In this document: piece by piece, positions 10,652-29,924 of the stretch
Position numbering within the stretch: position 1 is the first letter of the stretch
Layout of the letters: each line of letters starts with the position of its first letter
Assembly: GCF_902459465.1 (NCBI RefSeq)
Contig: NC_047073.1
Coordinates: 5,890,001 to 5,954,000, forward strand
Reading direction: 5' to 3'
Length of the DNA: 64,000 bases
From: Asterias rubens
Lineage: Eukaryota
Translations under genes and position numbers: made by a program
Notes under the pieces: model-generated
Seen by the model: the letters and a program-made list of their open reading frames with translations, nothing else
The model's database searches: none
Told to the model about the DNA's origin: nothing

Positions 10652-10685
10652 CAAAGAGGGTAAAGAGAGCCTGAGGCGTGACGAG
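10652..10685 (-). CDS. PTBP1: 34-nt RRM3 exon (LVTPQALFTLF-G), equivalent to PTBP1 exon 11 / PTBP2 exon 10
   Basis: gcatag|CTC...TTTG|GTATGC; exactly 34 nt; matches VTPQSLFILFG. Confidence 0.96.
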
Positions 10686-16440: not shown

Positions 16441-17200
16441 TCTAGTATATCCCACATGTACCCATCATTAAGCTAGTTCCATCTAATCTCCAAGGTTCAA
16501 TTAATGAGTTAACCCAGTAGATCCTAATGTAGCTATTAATGTCCCCAGTTCCATACAATCTCCAGGGTTCACAATATGATTTTAAACCCAGTAGATCCCA
16601 CATGTACCCATCATTGGCCCCGATTTCATTCAATCTCCAGGGTTCACTCAATGAGCTACCCAGTAGATTCCACATGTACCCATCATTGGCCCCAATTCCA
16701 TTCAATCTCCAGGGTTCACTCAATGAGCTACCCAGTAGATCCCACATGTACCCATCATTGGCCCCGATTTCATTCAATCTCCAGGGTTCACTCAATGAGC
16801 TACCCAGTAGATTCCACATGTACCCATCATTGGCCCCAATTCCATTCAATCTCCAAGGTTCACTCAATGAGCTACCCAGTATATTCCACATGTACCCATC
16901 ATTGGCCCCAATTCTATTAAATCTCCAGGGATCACTCAATGAGTAAACCCAGTATATCCCACATGTACCCATCATTGGCCCCGATTCCATTAAATCTCCA
17001 GGGTTCACTCAATGAGTTGACCCAGTAGATCCCACATGTACCCATCATTGGCCCCGATTCCATTCAATCTCCACAGTTAACCCACTGAGTTAAGCCAGAA
17101 CCCAATGAATTAACCCAGTAGATCCCAAATGTACCCATTATTAGTCCGAATTCCCTCCAACCTCCAGTGTTAACCAAACAAGTTAACCCAGTGGATCCTA
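16441..17200. repeat. 72-bp minisatellite, about 10 copies, degenerate at the edges
   Basis: Unit aatctccagggttcactcaatgagctacccagtagatcccacatgtacccatcattggccccgatttcattc; appears as a 24-aa period in the ORF track. Confidence 0.93.
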
Positions 17201-18446: not shown

Positions 18447-18505
18447 AATTTTGGCATCATTAGCTTCTTTGCTATTGTTGAACTGGATTAGAGCTTGGAA
18501 AACAT
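18447..18505 (-). CDS. PTBP1: PTB RRM2 middle exon (N-VFQALIQF...DAKI)
   Basis: FQALIQF is the RRM2 RNP1; aaacag|AT and ATT|GTAAGT; 59 nt. Confidence 0.96.
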
Positions 18506-18872
18506 CTGTTTGGGAAGAGGACAAGTTAACAAGAGATTAGTTTTAAAACAATTACAATTAGAGCGGTTTATGATATTTAAATGAGGGCCGAATTTGATAT
18601 TTATAAACTTAATTTGCTTGGCAAAAAACAATGTAGGGAACCGTTACAATAAACATCACAAACATCCTGGGTACAAGGTTTGGTAAAAATGGGTCATCCG
18701 TTATTTAATAAGCTTGGGCAGTTTTTGTCTATGGTTAACCATCGCCAAACTATTGGGGTATTCAAACAAAACTACAAACAAAAACTGTGGAATTCAGTGC
18801 TTCCAGCACCAGCCCTTTACAGGGCTAAGCGTGGAACTCTGTGGCAAAAAGTCCCATGAAATAGAGCCCAGG

Positions 18873-19028
18873 TAAAGCCCGGTTCATACTTTTGATGTCA
18901 CATGGCTGTTTTTGCAGCGAATGTTTCGCAGGAGTTGAGCATAAGTCAACCGACGTAAATTATTCATTGCGATTTGTGACGTCAATCGTGTCGCATTCAC
19001 ATTCGCAGGAAGTATGAACTGGGCTTAA
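18873..19028. mobile_element. PIF/Harbinger-like MITE (TAA-flanked)
   Basis: taa-agcccggttcatactt ... aagtatgaactgggct-taa; second copy at 44177-44309. Confidence 0.8.
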
Positions 19029-19074
19029 GATGAGAGATCAACACAGAAGACTGACTTCATTTAGAAGAACTTAC

Positions 19075-19300
19075 TGTTCTTAGTGAAGGTGACTACCTTC
19101 AAGATTGTTCCATACTTGGAGAAGATTTGGTGTAAGGTGTCCACATTGACGGGGTAGATCATGTGTTCAATGACGGCACGGAGTACGTGCTGAGGACCTC
19201 CTGGGCTGTCTGCTACTTTGGGTGACGAGCTTATGGAGGAAAACTGATGCTGAGGCAGGAGTGCTTGTGTTGCTTGTAACGCTGCCTGGGCTGCCACGTT
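19075..19300 (-). CDS. PTBP1: PTB linker and RRM2 start (NVAAQAALQA...VLRAVIEHMIYPVNVDTLHQIFSKYG...FTKN)
   Basis: Clear PTB RRM2 match; atacag|AAC and AACA|GTAAGT; 226 nt, ends in phase 1. Confidence 0.97.
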
Positions 19301-20608
19301 CTGTATAATAGAATGCAGGGAAACAAAGGTGTTAGGAAAACAGTTTTTTTATATTAAACAAATCGCTCATCTCGTTAATTTCTCCAGACATTTATGGGGG
19401 TTGGTTACATGGAGCTGTTATAAGCAGAAGATATTGCTGGGCAAGTTTATTGGCTTAGCAAATATCACCTTAGTACTTGCAGATTGTAAACATAGAATAG
19501 ATTGCCTGTTTCTGCTATACGGGAATTGTACATTAAGCAGCTTAGATAAAGCTTAACATGTTAACCCGAGTTGAATTTCATCCGGTAACAAACTTACTAA
19601 TAAGGCTTTATTTAAAGGTTGCAGCCTTTTGGATTTTATTTTGAAGTTGAGGAGAGCGATAAGATTTTGTGAAAAAGTGCGAGAGGGTGAGATATACACA
19701 GAGATCATAAACAGATAGTATGAGTTTCCAGATTGTTTTTAAGAAACAGAGTACAATAACAGAAATAGTGAAACAATATCAAGTACAGTCAGATAGGTAT
19801 GGCACTTAGTTTTTAAACAGGCCTGGAATCACATTGAGGTCGTGACCTTTGACAACCCCTGTGGTCTTCGTTTTTACATGGCCACCCCTGTTCCCATAGA
19901 CGTGTTGATGTTCTTTTGGCAACGACCCCAGCCAATGTTCAATTCCAGGCATGTGTAAATGGACTTTACAGATGAGATTGAAAACTGTATACAGGTTGCT
20001 CAGAAAGGTCTTTGAACGAACTTTAACTGAAAAGTCAATGCCTGGAGTGAGCATTTCTAAGAATACATGTACAGGACTCCAAAATTGACACTTGACTGCA
20101 AGTCTGAGGCCAGTGATTTCAGAACCTAGGCATGTTGAGCTACAAGCCCTGAAGTCTTGTGAATTTTCGCCCCAAATTTGATAATATAACTTTTCTGTGC
20201 AAGTTCTCACCTTCAAATACATGCACTTTTTTTTCTTCTTTTTTACTTTGAATTTGTGTATTAAATTAGCCAAAGCCTGTCTGCTCACTGTATACAATTT
20301 TTCTAAACAGATAATATATGTTCCATGCTCAATAAAAGTATTCATAAATTATTCTCATCATGGTAAATTATTCTAGGGCATGTGAGATAATTTGACACAC
20401 AGTCAAATTATTCAGAGTCGCTGGAAAGACTTTACTGCTTAAATTCACTTACTGGGGAGTTTCAGACAGTATATGGCAACATACAAACCAGGTAATGTTC
20501 CATTGGTTATGTATTTCTAATGCACAATCAATATCGATCGTCTTTATACGTCTGCCACTACCAAGCAACCCCAAAACACTCCAATTGAAAACTGAAAAGC
20601 ATTCCTTT

Positions 20609-20780
20609 CAGGTCTGATACTTCAAGGAGGCAACCAAGGTGATTACCTCCTTGCCCCCTGGTTATTGCCTTGGTGCCCTTGAAACGCTCAAGTAGTAACT
20701 TACAGTTTCATCATAGGGTGCCTTGCATCCCATATAAAATGCCTTGGTGCCTTTGCCCTTTCAAAAAAAAACATGCATGA
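20609..20780. mobile_element. CAGG...CCTG short element (hAT-like MITE family)
   Basis: Shares ggtcattgccttggtgccc...gccctttcaaaa with 36137-36271, 39856-40025 and reverse copies near 11200-11340 and 31840-31900. Confidence 0.7.
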
Positions 20781-21397
20781 TTGTCTAAAACAAATTTAGT
20801 GGAGGACAAATTTTCCCCGTACATTTATATACATGTATGACTTAATAATGCGGTTTTGCCTTGTGCCACAGCAGCATAAAAAGTGTGCAGAGTCACTCGA
20901 TTCCTAACATATGGTGACTTTCTGGCATTTAAATGTCAATGTAACATCCCTGAAAGAACAGAGCACCGTGTAGTTTGGAAATTAAAATGTTAATTGTATC
21001 TGGCATGACATCCAGGAAGTTCAAATGAATCAAATTTCACTCTTTTTTTTCTAAAGCTGAAACTCTGTCTTTTTTTTTATTTTTCAACATTTTGTTTATT
21101 ATCAATATCAAGCATTGTGTTTGGGATTATCACAGGAGGACTAAAACAGTCACTTTAAATTTTGTTTGTGGAAACACCACGTGTGTATTGCCAGGCAGAT
21201 TTAGTTCTTTCGAGGGCTGTCTGGCTTTATATTCTACTACCGCAGAGTAGGTTTTCGAGAAAATCGATCGGCTTTTCAATTTGTAAGGGTAGACTTGAGC
21301 ATGGAACATATAATACGTTGTTTATTTTATGTGTAAATGTCTTAAGGTGAAGAAGATGGAAATATAAGAAAAGATAAAAAGAGACACCAACAGACAC

Positions 21398-21514
21398 GGT
21401 GTTCTTGTCCAGATTGCCAGAGTAGGAGTCACTGTCTGGGAGGAGAGTCCCTGACGAGGAGGGATTGTTTAGCACAGCATTCACAGCAGCAAGGGCAGCC
21501 TGTACCGCCACCGT
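21398..21514 (-). CDS. PTBP1: Candidate alternative cassette exon in the RRM1-RRM2 linker (TVAVQAALAAVNAVL...SGNLDKNT)
   Basis: Acceptor cttcttgtag|ACG in phase 0; peptide resembles PTB AQAALQAVNSV..SGNL; donor uncertain (ACC|GTGTCT gives 117 nt in frame, TTG|GTGTCT at 21388 gives 127 nt and a frameshift). Confidence 0.6.
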
Positions 21515-24500
21515 CTACAAGAAGTAGGAAGTTGAGAAGAGACGAGGCGAAAGGGAAGAGGGAGGAGGATGAGGAGTGTGGGGAGTATGGTGAGAGGTGG
21601 CATTGGAAGAAAGAGTATTGGATTGAGGGAGATGGGAGGAATTTAAAAGGGGTAGAAATGGGAGGAGTCATGCAAAATGGGAGGAATCATGCAATGTGGT
21701 TGGAGCCAGGCATTGTGGGAGGAGCCAGACAATGGAGTGAAGCCATTGAAGTTGGATTAAAGGTGCAATTGGATTATTTGGGATGAGATGAGATTGAACA
21801 ACGGACAGATTCAAGATTTGATGAAGTCAAAGAAAGAGAGATGAGCAGAAGACAAGTATGGTTATAACATTGGGGGATCCAAAATGGGTTGGGTTACAGT
21901 AGGAGTGGATCAACAGAAGGGCGGAGTCACAAAAGGGGTGGGGTCACAGAGGGGTGGAGTCACATGAGGGGCGGAGTCACAAAAGAGGGCGGAGTTACAG
22001 AAGTGGTAAAAACAAAAAGTTGACAAAGCAAACAATCATGATCAACATGACACACGGGGAGGTCAGCAAGTGAGATCAAACCAAATGTGGGTGATATAAA
22101 AATAGACAATTTATTTTTTTTAAGTGAGGTGAGGTGAAGGAAGTAGGTGAAGCAGAACAAAATGAGGATTTGAGCCAGATGGCATTGTATGAGTTCCACA
22201 AATAGAGAAGCGTTTTGATTAGTGGACCAAGGAAGGGTCAGGTAAAGGAGGAAGAAAAGACAAAGAGTTAAATGACAGATCAAGTTGAAATCAAAGAATT
22301 ATAAATGTACATGTTTTTTTCAAGAGGAACATGTTTACATCCATGATATAATAATTAGGTTGTGATGTGAAATGAGAAAGAAGTTGATAAGGTTATGTCA
22401 AGATGGATTGGAGGAAAAGAAATTATGAAAAGAGAAAATAAAAAGAGAGTTAAGGCTGATTAGAAATTGATTTCCACATTTGGTTTATATTTCTTTCAGT
22501 AATACAATATTGAAAACCAAGACTAACAACAACTTGTAGAAGGTATTGATGAACTAAAACTGGGAAAAAATGTTACTATCAAAAGTGACAAAGTTGTTTT
22601 CTATTAGGAGAAATGGTTTTCGACATTGTGGCTTTTTGTACAATTATCTTGTTTCCTTAATGCATTAAACATCATCGCAACTATAGTGAATGTGCGTAAC
22701 TGAAGTCTTCGATCAAAATGAGACACTTCTCATTTGCCATAATTTGAAGGTCTCTGGTATTGTCTGGACTCTGTCCTATTAACTAAAATGGTCTGAATTG
22801 CTACAGGACTTTGATTTGAGTCCGTAAAACCGAGTTGATTTTGATGAATTGCAGAGTTAAAGTAAGTACCGTTGCATTGTATTGTGAGTTGCGCCCCCCA
22901 GTGTCCTATACACAATAAGATGTTATAGTGTTAAAGGATTGTTAAGAAAGGATGCAATTTATTTTATTTTTTCAAACAAACAGCGAGGGGAAAATTAATG
23001 AGAGTAAAAAAACAAGTTAGCGATAAATCATACAATAAGTTAGGAAATGAACGTGAAAGTTTAATAGATGATTTTATAATGATGTGAAATAGCGGTTGAA
23101 GTTAATGTTGAGGATGAAGGATTGAAGTATACGTTAAGAAATGGTTTAAGGCCAGGAGTAAGAGAGGAGGGGTGGTAGGTAGAGGGAGGAGAGATGATAA
23201 GGAGGATGAGAAATTAAAGAAAATTGAAGGTGATGGGAGTGACGCAACCAAAGGAAAGACAAGATGAGCAGGGATGTGGAAAACGCATGAGTACAGAGAT
23301 GAAGACAAATTCAAGATGAGGAATCAAACGGGGAGATATGGGGGAAAGTTGGAGGAGGTTTTCAAGAAAGATGAAATCAGAAATGAAGGGGAGAAACAGA
23401 AAAAGGAAGAGGAAAATGGGAGAGATAAAAAAATAACAAGATGTTAGCATTCAAGGCATCAGATATGAATCAAAAAAGATGATTTGCAGAGAACAGATGC
23501 ATAAGTTTCTTTTCAACAATTAACAAAAGAAAAACAACTTGTGCTGAAAAAGTTTTACAATGTTTTCTAATTACCAAAAAAATTAATTCAGCGAGAAGTT
23601 TGAGGGTTTATTTTGAAGTAAGAATCAGAATGGATCGGGATGCATGTGAAACAACATAGCATGATGAAGCACACGAATCGACACACAATCAGAAGGATAC
23701 TCTACAACAGTAATCCCCGGTATTTTGAGGGGACAAGCAAGGACGAACAACCCTTTTTCACAGCATTCCTTTCTTTCTACACACACACAAAGTATTATTC
23801 GTTTTCAATGACAATTGTTTGTCAAAAAGCCTTAGGACTGGTAAGAGTGTTGGCTCTAAGGACGGTCGCCCATGGTAACACTACACGTTGTTATTTCAAA
23901 TGTGTGTAGAGCAGTACAGCAAACCAGAAGCCTTTGATACAGTACACGGAAATTGTGCCTAGCGGCCCTGATGCCCCCCCCCCCCCCTCCCCTCCCCTAA
24001 ATAGAATTGGGACTGGTGAGACAAATTTCTTTCGTTTTTTTCCCCCGCTTTTTTTTTTTTTTTTTTTCAGCACCTTTTCTTTGCTGGACAATGGAGGAAA
24101 TGTTGTTCCCTACTGGGATGAATTGTGTGACTGTCTGGAATGTACAAGGGTGTCTGGTTAGGAGCGATAATTGGTTTACATTAGCACCGGTATAGCACAA
24201 CAGGTGTATTGCTGAGAAATTGGGGGAAGGGTGGGGGAAACAGCATTGGAGATATCTAATGAAGGAATTTTGCAATCTTCTGTATCCAAACAGCTTTTCT
24301 TCTACTTTCTTGAAGGTTTTCTTCATCTAGTGTCAATACAAAATAACAACAAAAGCAACAACTAATTAAATACAAACACACAAACCCCCCCCCCCCCCAC
24401 CCAGACAAGCAGACCAAAAGAACGGTTTTAAATTCTTCACAATTTAAAGACGAACCTACATTTAGACTGTAGAACTTGTACAGATGTGTGGTTACTGGCC

Positions 24501-29777: not shown

Positions 29778-29924
29778 CTGATGTGCCGGGGAGTTATCTG
29801 TCTTCAACTCCTGATGGGTGGAGAACTGGACAAAGACAGGCTTGCCGTGCAGTGTAGTCGTGACTTGGTTGTAGTAGGATATCATTTTTGTGGATTGGCT
29901 AACATCGGCAAGCTCTATAAATGC
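29778..29924 (-). CDS. PTBP1: PTB RRM1, C-terminal part (AFIELADV...VQFSTHQELKTDNSPAHQ)
   Basis: Matches PTB AFIEM...IQFSNHKELKTD; atttcag|GCA and CAG|GTAGGT; 147 nt; missed by the ORF track. Confidence 0.96.

Follow-up and report, generated by a model that had tools for sequence, protein, structure and literature searches.

An optional micro-exon between RRM1 and RRM2

The window, a stretch of 64,000 nucleotides of the Asterias rubens genome, carries on its minus strand the PTB gene of this sea star, encoding a splicing repressor. The coding sequence of isoform X1 maps exactly to the window over all 2,004 nt, in 18 exons separated by GT-AG introns. Between the exon that encodes the second half of RRM1 and the exon with which RRM2 starts lie two optional exons, and the elements of this interval are listed in the direction of transcription (exon borders are marked by a slash).

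29778..29924, minus strand: upstream constitutive exon, second half of RRM1 (X1 mapping)
22906..22907, minus strand: AG of the micro-exon 3′ splice site, in the context tgtgtatag/GAC (spliced mapping of X1)
22870..22905, minus strand: 36-nt in-frame cassette micro-exon coding for DTGGRNSQYNAT (X1 mapping, AG/GT borders)
22864..22869, minus strand: weak micro-exon donor GTACTT (ACG/GTACTT), five of nine matches to CAG/GTAAGT
21515..22869, minus strand: 1,355-nt intron between the two optional exons (X1 mapping, gap scan)
21392..21514, minus strand: 123-nt in-frame cassette exon (TVAVQAALAAVNAV...) (X1 mapping)
19075..19300, minus strand: constitutive exon (NVAAQAALQATQ...), start of RRM2 (X1 mapping and RNA contigs)

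The upstream constitutive exon ends with ...NSPAHQ in phase 0 at the donor CAG/GTAGGT, and in XP_033636984.1 (X1) and XP_033636986.1 (X3) the residues DTGGRNSQYNAT sit between ...NSPAHQ and TVAVQAAL.... The A. rubens RefSeq isoforms X2 and X4 lack the micro-exon, and its 12 residues are the sole difference between X1 and X2. In Asterias amurensis, six isoforms (X1–X5 and X7) include the exon and X6 omits it. The Asterias isoforms surfaced with a profile that was deliberately weighted to the exon pieces of the window; a clean PTB profile search returned only arthropods and vertebrates. The range of the A. amurensis PTB gene is 107 kb. The 123-nt exon bears a second copy of the helix α3 motif and has a very weak donor (TCT/GTTGGT, 4/9 matches). 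All four combinations of the two optional exons preserve the reading frame, and the micro-exon without the 123-nt exon is found in no annotated isoform.

The annotation message is simple: 22905–22870 is a genuine optional exon that is already in RefSeq. The initial annotation had read the acceptor at 22906, the phase-0 translation DTGGRNSQYNAT and the donor ACG/GTACTT exactly as they appear in RefSeq X1 and X3, and had interpreted them as a cryptic exon that could be a micro-exon, a poison exon or an alternative last exon. Of these readings, the micro-exon is correct in detail, and it recurs in the six A. amurensis isoforms. The word cryptic does not apply to an exon that RefSeq already annotates, and an exon of 36 nt that is in frame and without a stop codon is no poison exon.

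The evidence for use of the micro-exon rests on RefSeq Gnomon models, and those of A. amurensis may not be fully independent of those of A. rubens. In the contigs of three RNA runs, only the form skipping both optional exons occurs, with no micro-exon junction. Contig depth is zero over 21461–23627, 19075–19303 is covered at a depth of 84–99, and exon 19075..19300 is the only one of this stretch that is present in these contigs; the ENA contigs (n=3) are confined to the RRM2 exon region. The RNA forms were inspected in assembled contigs, which can miss rare forms. A single metatranscriptome contig lies over the micro-exon (22834–23014, 181 nt, depth 3.2); it aligns colinearly with the genome, hence unspliced, and reaches 108 nt into the upstream intron. 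Exact-ORF look-ups around the AG-free zone upstream of the exon and an ORF-level protein query across the 123-nt exon gave no match, nor did a degenerate micro-exon pattern in JGI metagenome contigs, and an Apostichopus PTB isoform look-up returned no record.

Contigs without the micro-exon, taken together with the computational nature of RefSeq XP models, would fit an annotation artefact in which Gnomon took up a few mis-spliced or mis-aligned reads and the resulting exon was carried to the sister species, the AG-free tract being unrelated. We regard such an origin as very unlikely. Without transcript alignments, a Gnomon-type predictor would not propose an exon of 36 nt whose donor departs from the consensus. 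The pairing of isoforms X1 with X2 and X3 with X4 implies that both inclusion and skipping have evidence behind them, and the exon begins at the first AG after 601 nt devoid of this dinucleotide, a position that would be strangely coincidental if the exon were noise.

The sequence also contains what a read-through product would need. An in-frame TAG (22803–22801) follows after 34 codons and an AATAAA (22115–22110) lies about 755 nt beyond the weak (5/9) donor, both as initially listed; reading on to the TAG and polyadenylation past the AATAAA would yield an RRM1-only PTB or an NMD substrate, and the unspliced 181-nt contig crosses both splice sites. That such a poison event or alternative last exon operates here is nevertheless highly improbable. 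No annotated isoform of either Asterias species terminates at this position, the zero contig depth over 21461–23627 in three runs stands against 84–99 at the next exon, and the annotated use of the micro-exon keeps the frame. The unspliced contig itself, at a depth of 3.2 and extending 108 nt into the upstream intron, looks as expected of pre-mRNA or DNA. The initially proposed RRM1-only last exon finds no support in the annotated isoforms or in the contigs of the three runs. Nor does the site have the form of a recursive splice site: the acceptor junction reads tatag/GACACT, with no reconstituted YAG/GTRAGT.

AG depletion upstream of the optional exons

The intron sequence preceding each of the two optional exons is distinguished by the absence of a single dinucleotide, over the following intervals.

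23509..23510, minus strand: AG that bounds the 601-nt zone on its 5′ side (AG gap scan)
22908–23508, minus strand: AG-free zone of 601 nt upstream of the micro-exon (window sequence)
21517–22455, minus strand: second AG-free zone, 939 nt, last part of the 1,355-nt intron (gap scan)

The gap scan bears out the initially reported AG-free stretch, with zero AG between 22908 and 23508 on the minus strand. From AG to AG (23510–23509 to 22907–22906, start to start), the distance is 603 nt, which ranks second in the 64-kb window; the first, 941 nt, lies directly downstream and the third measures 191 nt, and the largest gap on the plus strand spans 202 nt. The 601-nt zone consists of 21.5 % A, 28.6 % C, 6.8 % G and 43.1 % T, corresponding to 72 % pyrimidines and 28 % purines. 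Its mononucleotide composition predicts 8.8 AGs where none occurs (Poisson P = 1.5e-4), and shuffling the zone 20,000 times never produced a sequence without AG. GA, by contrast, is present nine times against the same expectation of 8.8, and in the 939-nt zone 21 GAs stand against zero AGs; in a binomial test of AG versus GA, P is 0.002 for the 601-nt zone and 5e-7 for the 939-nt zone. The depletion in the 601-nt zone is specific to AG and goes beyond its low purine content. TG exceeds expectation (31 versus 17.7). Immediately upstream of the 601-nt zone AGs return, with the next AG gaps being 58 and 133 nt, and the 240 nt on its 5′ side hold about six AGs, yet are 70 % pyrimidine.

Across the gene, the AG gap amounts to 603 nt before the micro-exon, 941 nt before the 123-nt exon, 176 nt before an optional 34-nt exon, 191 nt before a fourth optional exon (45118–45020) and only 28 nt before the optional 102-nt exon. 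At the other coding exons the gaps range from 23 to 102 nt (leaving aside the first coding exon, whose start is the ATG). Long AG gaps in the PTB gene thus go mainly with optional exons.

The motif UCUU reaches 23.3 per kb in the 601-nt zone, compared with 4.6 per kb across the remainder of the intron; relative to the composition of the zone, neither UCUU (z = 0.1) nor CUCUCU (z = -0.1) is enriched.

Several other accounts of the zone were tried and rejected. A microsatellite or tandem repeat does not account for the missing AGs, since the 601 nt contain only one 26-nt two-copy repeat. The idea that an insertion or transposon divides one originally long tract is unsupported. In blastn comparisons of the 22458–22905 segment and both AG-free tracts with the whole window, no further copy was found and the tracts are mutually dissimilar; terminal repeats in the segment are absent except for a single weak 14-nt inverted pair, and the repeat-like pile-up of RNA contigs that is present at 20476–20869 and 18900–19096 is absent there. 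An RNA structure that draws a distal branch near the acceptor is likewise unsupported: for 621 nt spanning the zone, the predicted minimum free energy is -44.7 kcal/mol (z = -1.67), with almost no structure.

Candidate branch sites and a model of micro-exon inclusion

Motif scanning of the 601-nt zone reveals one distal and several nearer branch-site candidates, the principal ones being:

23443..23449, minus strand: TGCTAAC, top distal branch-site candidate, branch A at 23444 (-538) (in silico)
23016..23045, minus strand: TCCTAAC and CGCTAAC, nearer branch-site candidates (in silico)

The distal TGCTAAC matches TACTAAC in six of seven positions and lies 65 nt inside the zone. Of the 40 nt that follow, 88 % are pyrimidines, up to 14 of them in a row, and the strongest pyrimidine tract of the entire zone (about 23442–23390) comes directly after the motif. 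The initial annotation had drawn attention to this GCTAAC (23448–23443) and its long pyrimidine tract; both are present, and the distance between the candidate branch A (23444) and the acceptor G is 538 nt. Closer to the micro-exon, TCCTAAC (branch A 23040, -134), CGCTAAC (branch A 23017, -111, with 80 % pyrimidine over the next 40 nt) and TCTTAAC (branch A 22942, -36) are found. The -538 site makes a good branch-point candidate, one among several; the acceptor could also be served from -36, -111 or -134, in which case the distal 470 nt would not be needed.

If one of these three nearby sites were used, the exon would still be real, and the distal part of the AG-free zone would have arisen as a side effect of a pyrimidine-rich regulatory platform, through mutation bias or partly by chance, and not through 3′ splice-site scanning from a distant branch. 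We consider this unlikely. Three motifs of the CTAAC/TTAAC type within 134 nt of the acceptor, one of them (-111) followed by an 80 % pyrimidine tract, speak in its favour, as does a G content so low that only 8.8 AGs would be expected anyway, and the excess of TG hints at mutational skew. Set against these points, purines are tolerated and GA keeps its expected count where AG is absent, and the probability of extending the AG-free state over the 470 distal nucleotides at the local rate is about 1e-3. Moreover, the pattern is repeated in stronger form at the adjacent optional exon (AG 0, GA 21), and the long AG gaps of the PTB gene mainly accompany optional exons.

The explanation that we favour and hold to be probable is that a real optional 36-nt micro-exon of PTB is preceded by an AG-free zone because its branch and working pyrimidine tract lie far upstream. 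One or more branch points and a working tract at such a distance from the acceptor would keep the 601-nt zone AG-free: after the first splicing step, the spliceosome would pick the first AG downstream of the branch, so that any new AG within the zone would shift the 3′ splice site. Since the local pyrimidine tract is poor (56 % pyrimidine in the final 25 nt before the acceptor, joint lowest among the 17 acceptor sites of the gene) and the donor is weak, inclusion of the micro-exon would depend on favourable conditions. With about 23 UCUU per kb, the CU-rich zone probably serves as a platform on which PTB itself or a related repressor lands; binding of PTB is plausible but not specifically signalled, because the UCUU density matches the pyrimidine content (z = 0.1). 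Both the distant branch point and any regulation of the micro-exon by PTB are what we infer from sequence features.

Together with the 123-nt exon, the two zones would form a two-step switch, in which the choice of a branch in the upstream zone would lead to inclusion of both exons, a branch in the downstream (939-nt) zone to inclusion of the 123-nt exon only, and a branch near 19300 to inclusion of neither. A bolder and rather doubtful extension holds that the tandem zones (601 and 939 nt) could act as a graded sensor of PTB concentration, with the zone of branch choice setting three in-frame forms and thereby rewiring the α3 'sensor' helix of RRM1. Inclusion of the 123-nt exon would substitute a second helix copy, and the 12-residue insert would uncouple the helix from RRM1, such that autoregulation would proceed via isoform change instead of NMD, using branches more than 500 nt from the acceptor and beyond any mapped experimentally.

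The helix α3 hinge and comparison with known exons

At the protein level, alignment with mammalian PTBP1 places the 12-residue insertion at the start of RRM1 helix α3 (human Gln144–Val154). The mammalian motif QARAQAALQAV begins at residue 144 in this alignment, and the insertion point between ...SPAHQ and NVAAQAALQ... corresponds to the junction of human N143/Q144 with A145. The helix boundaries Gln144–Val154 are those reported for PTBP1 (PMC7192611), where α3 has been characterized as a transient sensor helix (Maris et al. 2020, NAR 48:4521; PMC11417363). In AlphaFold2 models of the RRM1–RRM2 segment, the micro-exon residues have a pLDDT of 35–43 and no secondary structure; the helices are predicted in X1 (both exons) and in X4 (neither exon), with α3 at low confidence in both, and the models do not distinguish the two forms. 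That the 12 residues would act as a flexible spacer between RRM1 and α3 is conjecture, and the effect on the protein stays so because α3 has low confidence with and without the insert. In the literature compared here, an alternative exon at the α3 hinge is not described for vertebrate PTBP1.

The micro-exon marks the hinge before α3 as a naturally variable site, and the proposed allosteric role of this helix thereby becomes testable with natural isoforms. At the RNA level, the locus is a second, independent spot in a PTB gene with the layout of a distant branch point, the known case being vertebrate exon 11, and here two AG-free zones in tandem precede two frame-preserving exons. If the branches truly lie 500–900 nt upstream, the locus would provide a convenient natural substrate to test the reach of 3′ splice-site scanning and to study its control by a repressor that coats the scanned tract.

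Micro-exons of up to 51 nt are a preferred target of repression by PTBP1 (PMC4317164), and RBFOX enhances them (Li et al. 2015, Genome Res 25:1); a related preprint reports lengthened distances between branch point and splice site at neural micro-exons (PMC12871342). The sea star exon resembles this class in its length of 36 nt (within the limit of 51 nt), a multiple of three that preserves the frame, in its weak splice sites (donor 5/9, proximal pyrimidine tract 56 %), in the extended pyrimidine-rich intron upstream and in the insertion of a short surface or linker peptide. It departs from the class in that its host gene is the repressor itself and in the lack of any GCAUG over roughly the first 1.1 kb downstream: GCATG is absent from 22869–21694, and the nearest copies are at 21693 and 21674, about 1.18 kb away. 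The 601-nt zone also exceeds by an order of magnitude the lengthening reported at neural micro-exons of vertebrates.

A closer likeness exists with the distant-branch-point exons. AG exclusion zones measure 381 nt at human PTB exon 11, 438 nt at nPTB exon 10 and 590 nt at Fugu PTB exon 11 (PMC1431707), and the branch point of PTBP1 exon 11 was located at -351 by mutagenesis (Gooding et al. 2006, Genome Biol 7:R1). In verified exons of this class, a branch consensus together with a pyrimidine tract lies close to the 5′ end of the zone, and all those that have been studied in experiments are under regulation by PTB (PMC1431707). The sea star micro-exon belongs to the same gene family, a long AG-free and pyrimidine-rich zone ends at an alternative exon with weak splice signals, and TGCTAAC with its pyrimidine tract lies near the 5′ end of the zone, a likeness at the level of a motif match. 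There are differences, too. Vertebrate exon 11 belongs to RRM3, whereas the zone described here occupies the intron of the RRM1–RRM2 linker, and the micro-exon is in frame (36 nt) with no coupling to NMD; the sea star homologue of exon 11 (34 nt, 10685–10652) has an AG-free zone of only 176 nt. In contrast with the known zones of 381–590 nt, the sea star zone extends over 601 nt in tandem with one of 939 nt, which places both among the longest reported for the family, and its branch has the standing of a candidate. The sea star layout matches the known AG-exclusion-zone class, of which it is a very long example.

The PTB gene and its 36-nt cassette exon

The minus strand of the window carries the gene for PTB (polypyrimidine-tract-binding protein). 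A clean PTB profile search returned arthropod and vertebrate proteins only; the Asterias clusters surfaced with a profile (alignment A3) weighted to the window's exon pieces, and comprise four A. rubens and seven A. amurensis isoforms. The A. rubens RefSeq isoform X1 (P0334, XP_033636984.1, 668 aa) matches the window base for base; its 18 coding exons span 55927 to 3748 and are separated by GT-AG introns throughout. In this protein the 12-residue peptide DTGGRNSQYNAT sits between ...NSPAHQ, the end of exon 29924-29778, and TVAVQAAL..., with which the 123-nt exon (21514-21392) begins.

The segment 22905-22870 is a cassette micro-exon of 36 nt that keeps the reading frame and is part of the annotation. 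The initial annotation had called it cryptic, a label that falls away since the exon is already in RefSeq, and had offered three identities: micro-exon, poison exon or alternative last exon. The first of these holds, in that RefSeq isoforms use the very acceptor and weak donor it named, while a poison exon is contradicted because the micro-exon is in frame and contains no stop codon. Its reading of the individual elements is borne out by the sequence: GCTAAC at 23448-23443, the acceptor tatag/GAC, the exon reading DTGGRNSQYNAT, the donor ACG/GTACTT, the in-frame TAG at 22803-22801 and the AATAAA at 22115-22110.

The 12 residues of the micro-exon are the sole difference between A. rubens X1 and X2, and none of the 4 A. 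rubens and 7 A. amurensis isoforms contains the micro-exon without the 123-nt exon.

Optional exons in the annotated isoforms
Micro-exon present, 123-nt exon present: A. rubens X1, X3; A. amurensis X1-X5, X7
Micro-exon absent, 123-nt exon present: A. rubens X2
Micro-exon absent, 123-nt exon absent: A. rubens X4; A. amurensis X6

AG-free zones, candidate branch sites and splice signals

A direct count of AG gaps agrees with the 601-nt AG exclusion zone of the initial annotation: minus strand 22908-23508 holds 601 bases without AG, between AGs at 23510-23509 and 22907-22906. The resulting 603-nt gap before the micro-exon is the second longest on either strand of the 64-kb window.

Other long AG gaps in the window
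22457 to 21516, minus strand: the longest, 941 nt, just downstream of the 601-nt zone
Minus strand, third longest: 191 nt
Plus strand, maximum: 202 nt

With its pyrimidine-rich composition (72 % C+T, 6.8 % G) the zone would be expected to hold as few as 8.8 AGs, yet none is observed (Poisson P = 1.5e-4; 0 of 20,000 mononucleotide shuffles AG-free). The control dinucleotide GA, the mirror of AG with an equal mononucleotide expectation, occurs nine times (binomial P = 0.002), and in the neighbouring 939-nt zone (21517-22455, upstream of the 123-nt exon) 21 GAs accompany zero AGs (P = 5e-7). Purines as such are tolerated in the 601-nt zone; the exclusion is specific to AG. Across the gene, long AG gaps mainly accompany optional exons.

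Length of the AG gap upstream of each acceptor
Micro-exon (36 nt): 603 nt
123-nt exon: 941 nt
34-nt exon 10652-10685, homologue of the vertebrate PTB exon 11 / nPTB exon 10 NMD switch: 176 nt; weak donor TTG/GTATGC, 5/9
99-nt cassette exon 45118-45020, which A. amurensis X3 lacks: 191 nt, the longest once the three exons with long AG-free zones are set aside
102-nt cassette exon 14871-14770 (34 aa, GHGMMSNPF...), absent from A. rubens X3 and A. amurensis X4: 28 nt
Other coding exons: 23-102 nt (first coding exon excluded, as it starts at ATG)

Within the 601-nt zone, the best branch-consensus match with the best pyrimidine tract lies far from the acceptor, and three candidates are nearer.

Candidate branch sites (minus strand; distances from the micro-exon acceptor)
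A 23444, -538, 65 nt into the zone from its 5' edge: TGCTAAC, with 88 % pyrimidine in the following 40 nt
-134: TCCTAAC
-111: CGCTAAC, then an 80 % pyrimidine tract
-36: TCTTAAC

Hardly any RNA structure is predicted in the zone. UCUU reaches 23 per kb, compared with 4.6 per kb in the remaining intron, at a density not above the prediction from the base composition of the zone. The local signals of the micro-exon are the weakest: the last 25 intron bases before it are 56 % pyrimidine, joint lowest of the gene's 17 acceptor sites, and its donor matches 5/9 consensus positions. The donor of the 123-nt exon matches 4/9.

The 939-nt tract has features of its own.

21674-21698, minus strand: a 19-nt tandem repeat in which two successive units each contain an RBFOX-type TGCATG motif, ~160-180 nt 5' of the 123-nt exon
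21880-22007: tandem repeats of 17-, 33- and 50-nt period (gene-strand units ...GTGACTCCGCCCC...)

Transcript evidence and the introns around RRM2

The RNA check relied on assembled contigs, from which rare forms are lost. In the contigs of RNA runs X1, X2 and X9 (run handles, distinct from the isoforms) the RRM2 exon is the sole PTB piece on the stretch examined, and neither the micro-exon nor the 123-nt exon is present; the assembled form therefore most likely skips both optional exons, the partner exon at 29778 lying outside that stretch. An alternative last exon finds no support in the annotation or the RNA contigs: no isoform ends at 22905-22870, and contig depth in the three runs is zero over 21461-23627, against 84-99 on the constitutive exon 19300-19075. 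Run X12, a marine metatranscriptome, yielded one 181-nt contig (22834-23014, depth 3.2), colinear and identical with the window across both micro-exon splice sites and flanks, as expected for pre-mRNA or DNA; it also places sea-star nucleic acid in an environmental RNA sample. A micro-exon inclusion junction was not seen in the assembled contigs of runs X1, X2, X9 and X12, and the evidence for use of the micro-exon is the RefSeq models. The Gnomon pipeline is not known to propose an exon as short as 36 nt, and with a non-consensus donor, unless transcript alignments call for it. The A. amurensis models may be partly dependent on those of A. rubens.

The introns around the RRM2 exons have further features.

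20476-20869 and 18900-19096: RNA contigs stacked thousands deep, with numerous partial matches and loose ends, suggestive of transposon fragments or expressed repeats within the introns on either side of the RRM2 exon
18500-20750: ENA metagenome contigs L001 and L002, ~99 % identical, lacking ~107 nt (20128-20234) and ~114 nt (18568-18681), intronic indel polymorphisms
RRM2 exon region: contig L003, 91 % identical, which may come from another asteroid species
16445-17008: long ORFs of repeated peptide units of ~23 residues on both strands, a sign that the intron separating the RRM2 exons contains a tandem DNA repeat

Protein hinge, proposed branch choice and known systems

In an alignment with mammalian PTBP1, the junction between ...SPAHQ and NVAAQAALQ... 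falls between human N143/Q144 and A145, the start of helix alpha3 (Gln144-Val154; PMC7192611), which forms and docks on RRM1 upon binding of structured RNA (PMC7192611, PMC11417363). The helix motif occurs again in the 123-nt exon (VQAALAAVNAV), and the micro-exon places 12 hydrophilic, glycine-containing residues ahead of that copy. The AlphaFold2 model of X1 assigns the 12 residues pLDDT 35-43 without secondary structure; the two copies of the helix, like the single one in the model of X4, are predicted helical at low confidence. Among ~180 PTB proteins, inserts at the alpha3 hinge are rare outside Asterias. A few isoforms from other species (proteins P0226, P0215, P0322, P0262, P0047) have unrelated inserts just before helix alpha3, such as one of 18 aa in isoform X7 of a termite and one of 26 aa in isoform X2 of a bat, and this intron position may be a recurrent alternative-exon site, or these may be retained-intron artefacts.

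In distant-branch-point exons the first splicing step uses a branch far upstream, selection purges AGs over the entire branch-acceptor interval, which holds regulatory elements, and the exons are alternatively spliced (Gooding et al. 2006, PMC1431707). The PTB family offers precedents, with AG-free zones of 381 nt (human PTB exon 11), 438 nt (nPTB exon 10) and 590 nt (Fugu PTB exon 11; PMC1431707). Because the layout fits this class and its PTB-family precedents, the 601-nt zone can be read as the probable trace of at least one branch point lying well upstream of 22906. Since the tract is CU-rich, every studied exon of the class is a PTB target (PMC1431707) and micro-exons are preferentially repressed by PTBP1 (PMC4317164), the regulator is likely PTB or a paralogue-like repressor, whose binding we infer. 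The annotated isoform set suggests an ordered splicing choice: a branch in the upstream zone would commit to the micro-exon, whose donor would then pair with the acceptor of the 123-nt exon; one in the downstream zone would yield the 123-nt exon alone; and one near 19300 would skip both.

Judged by sequence, the micro-exon appears to work like an AG-exclusion-zone distant-branch-point exon, showing all the sequence-level features of a class defined by a mapped distant branch, here a candidate. In size, frame and weak splice sites it agrees with the micro-exon class, but no GCAUG, a feature of that class, lies nearby downstream. Compared with the known PTB exon 11 case, the sea-star micro-exon lies in another intron, within the RRM1-RRM2 linker, and preserves the frame, whereas the known case is coupled to NMD; its zone is longer and stands in tandem with a second one that is longer still.
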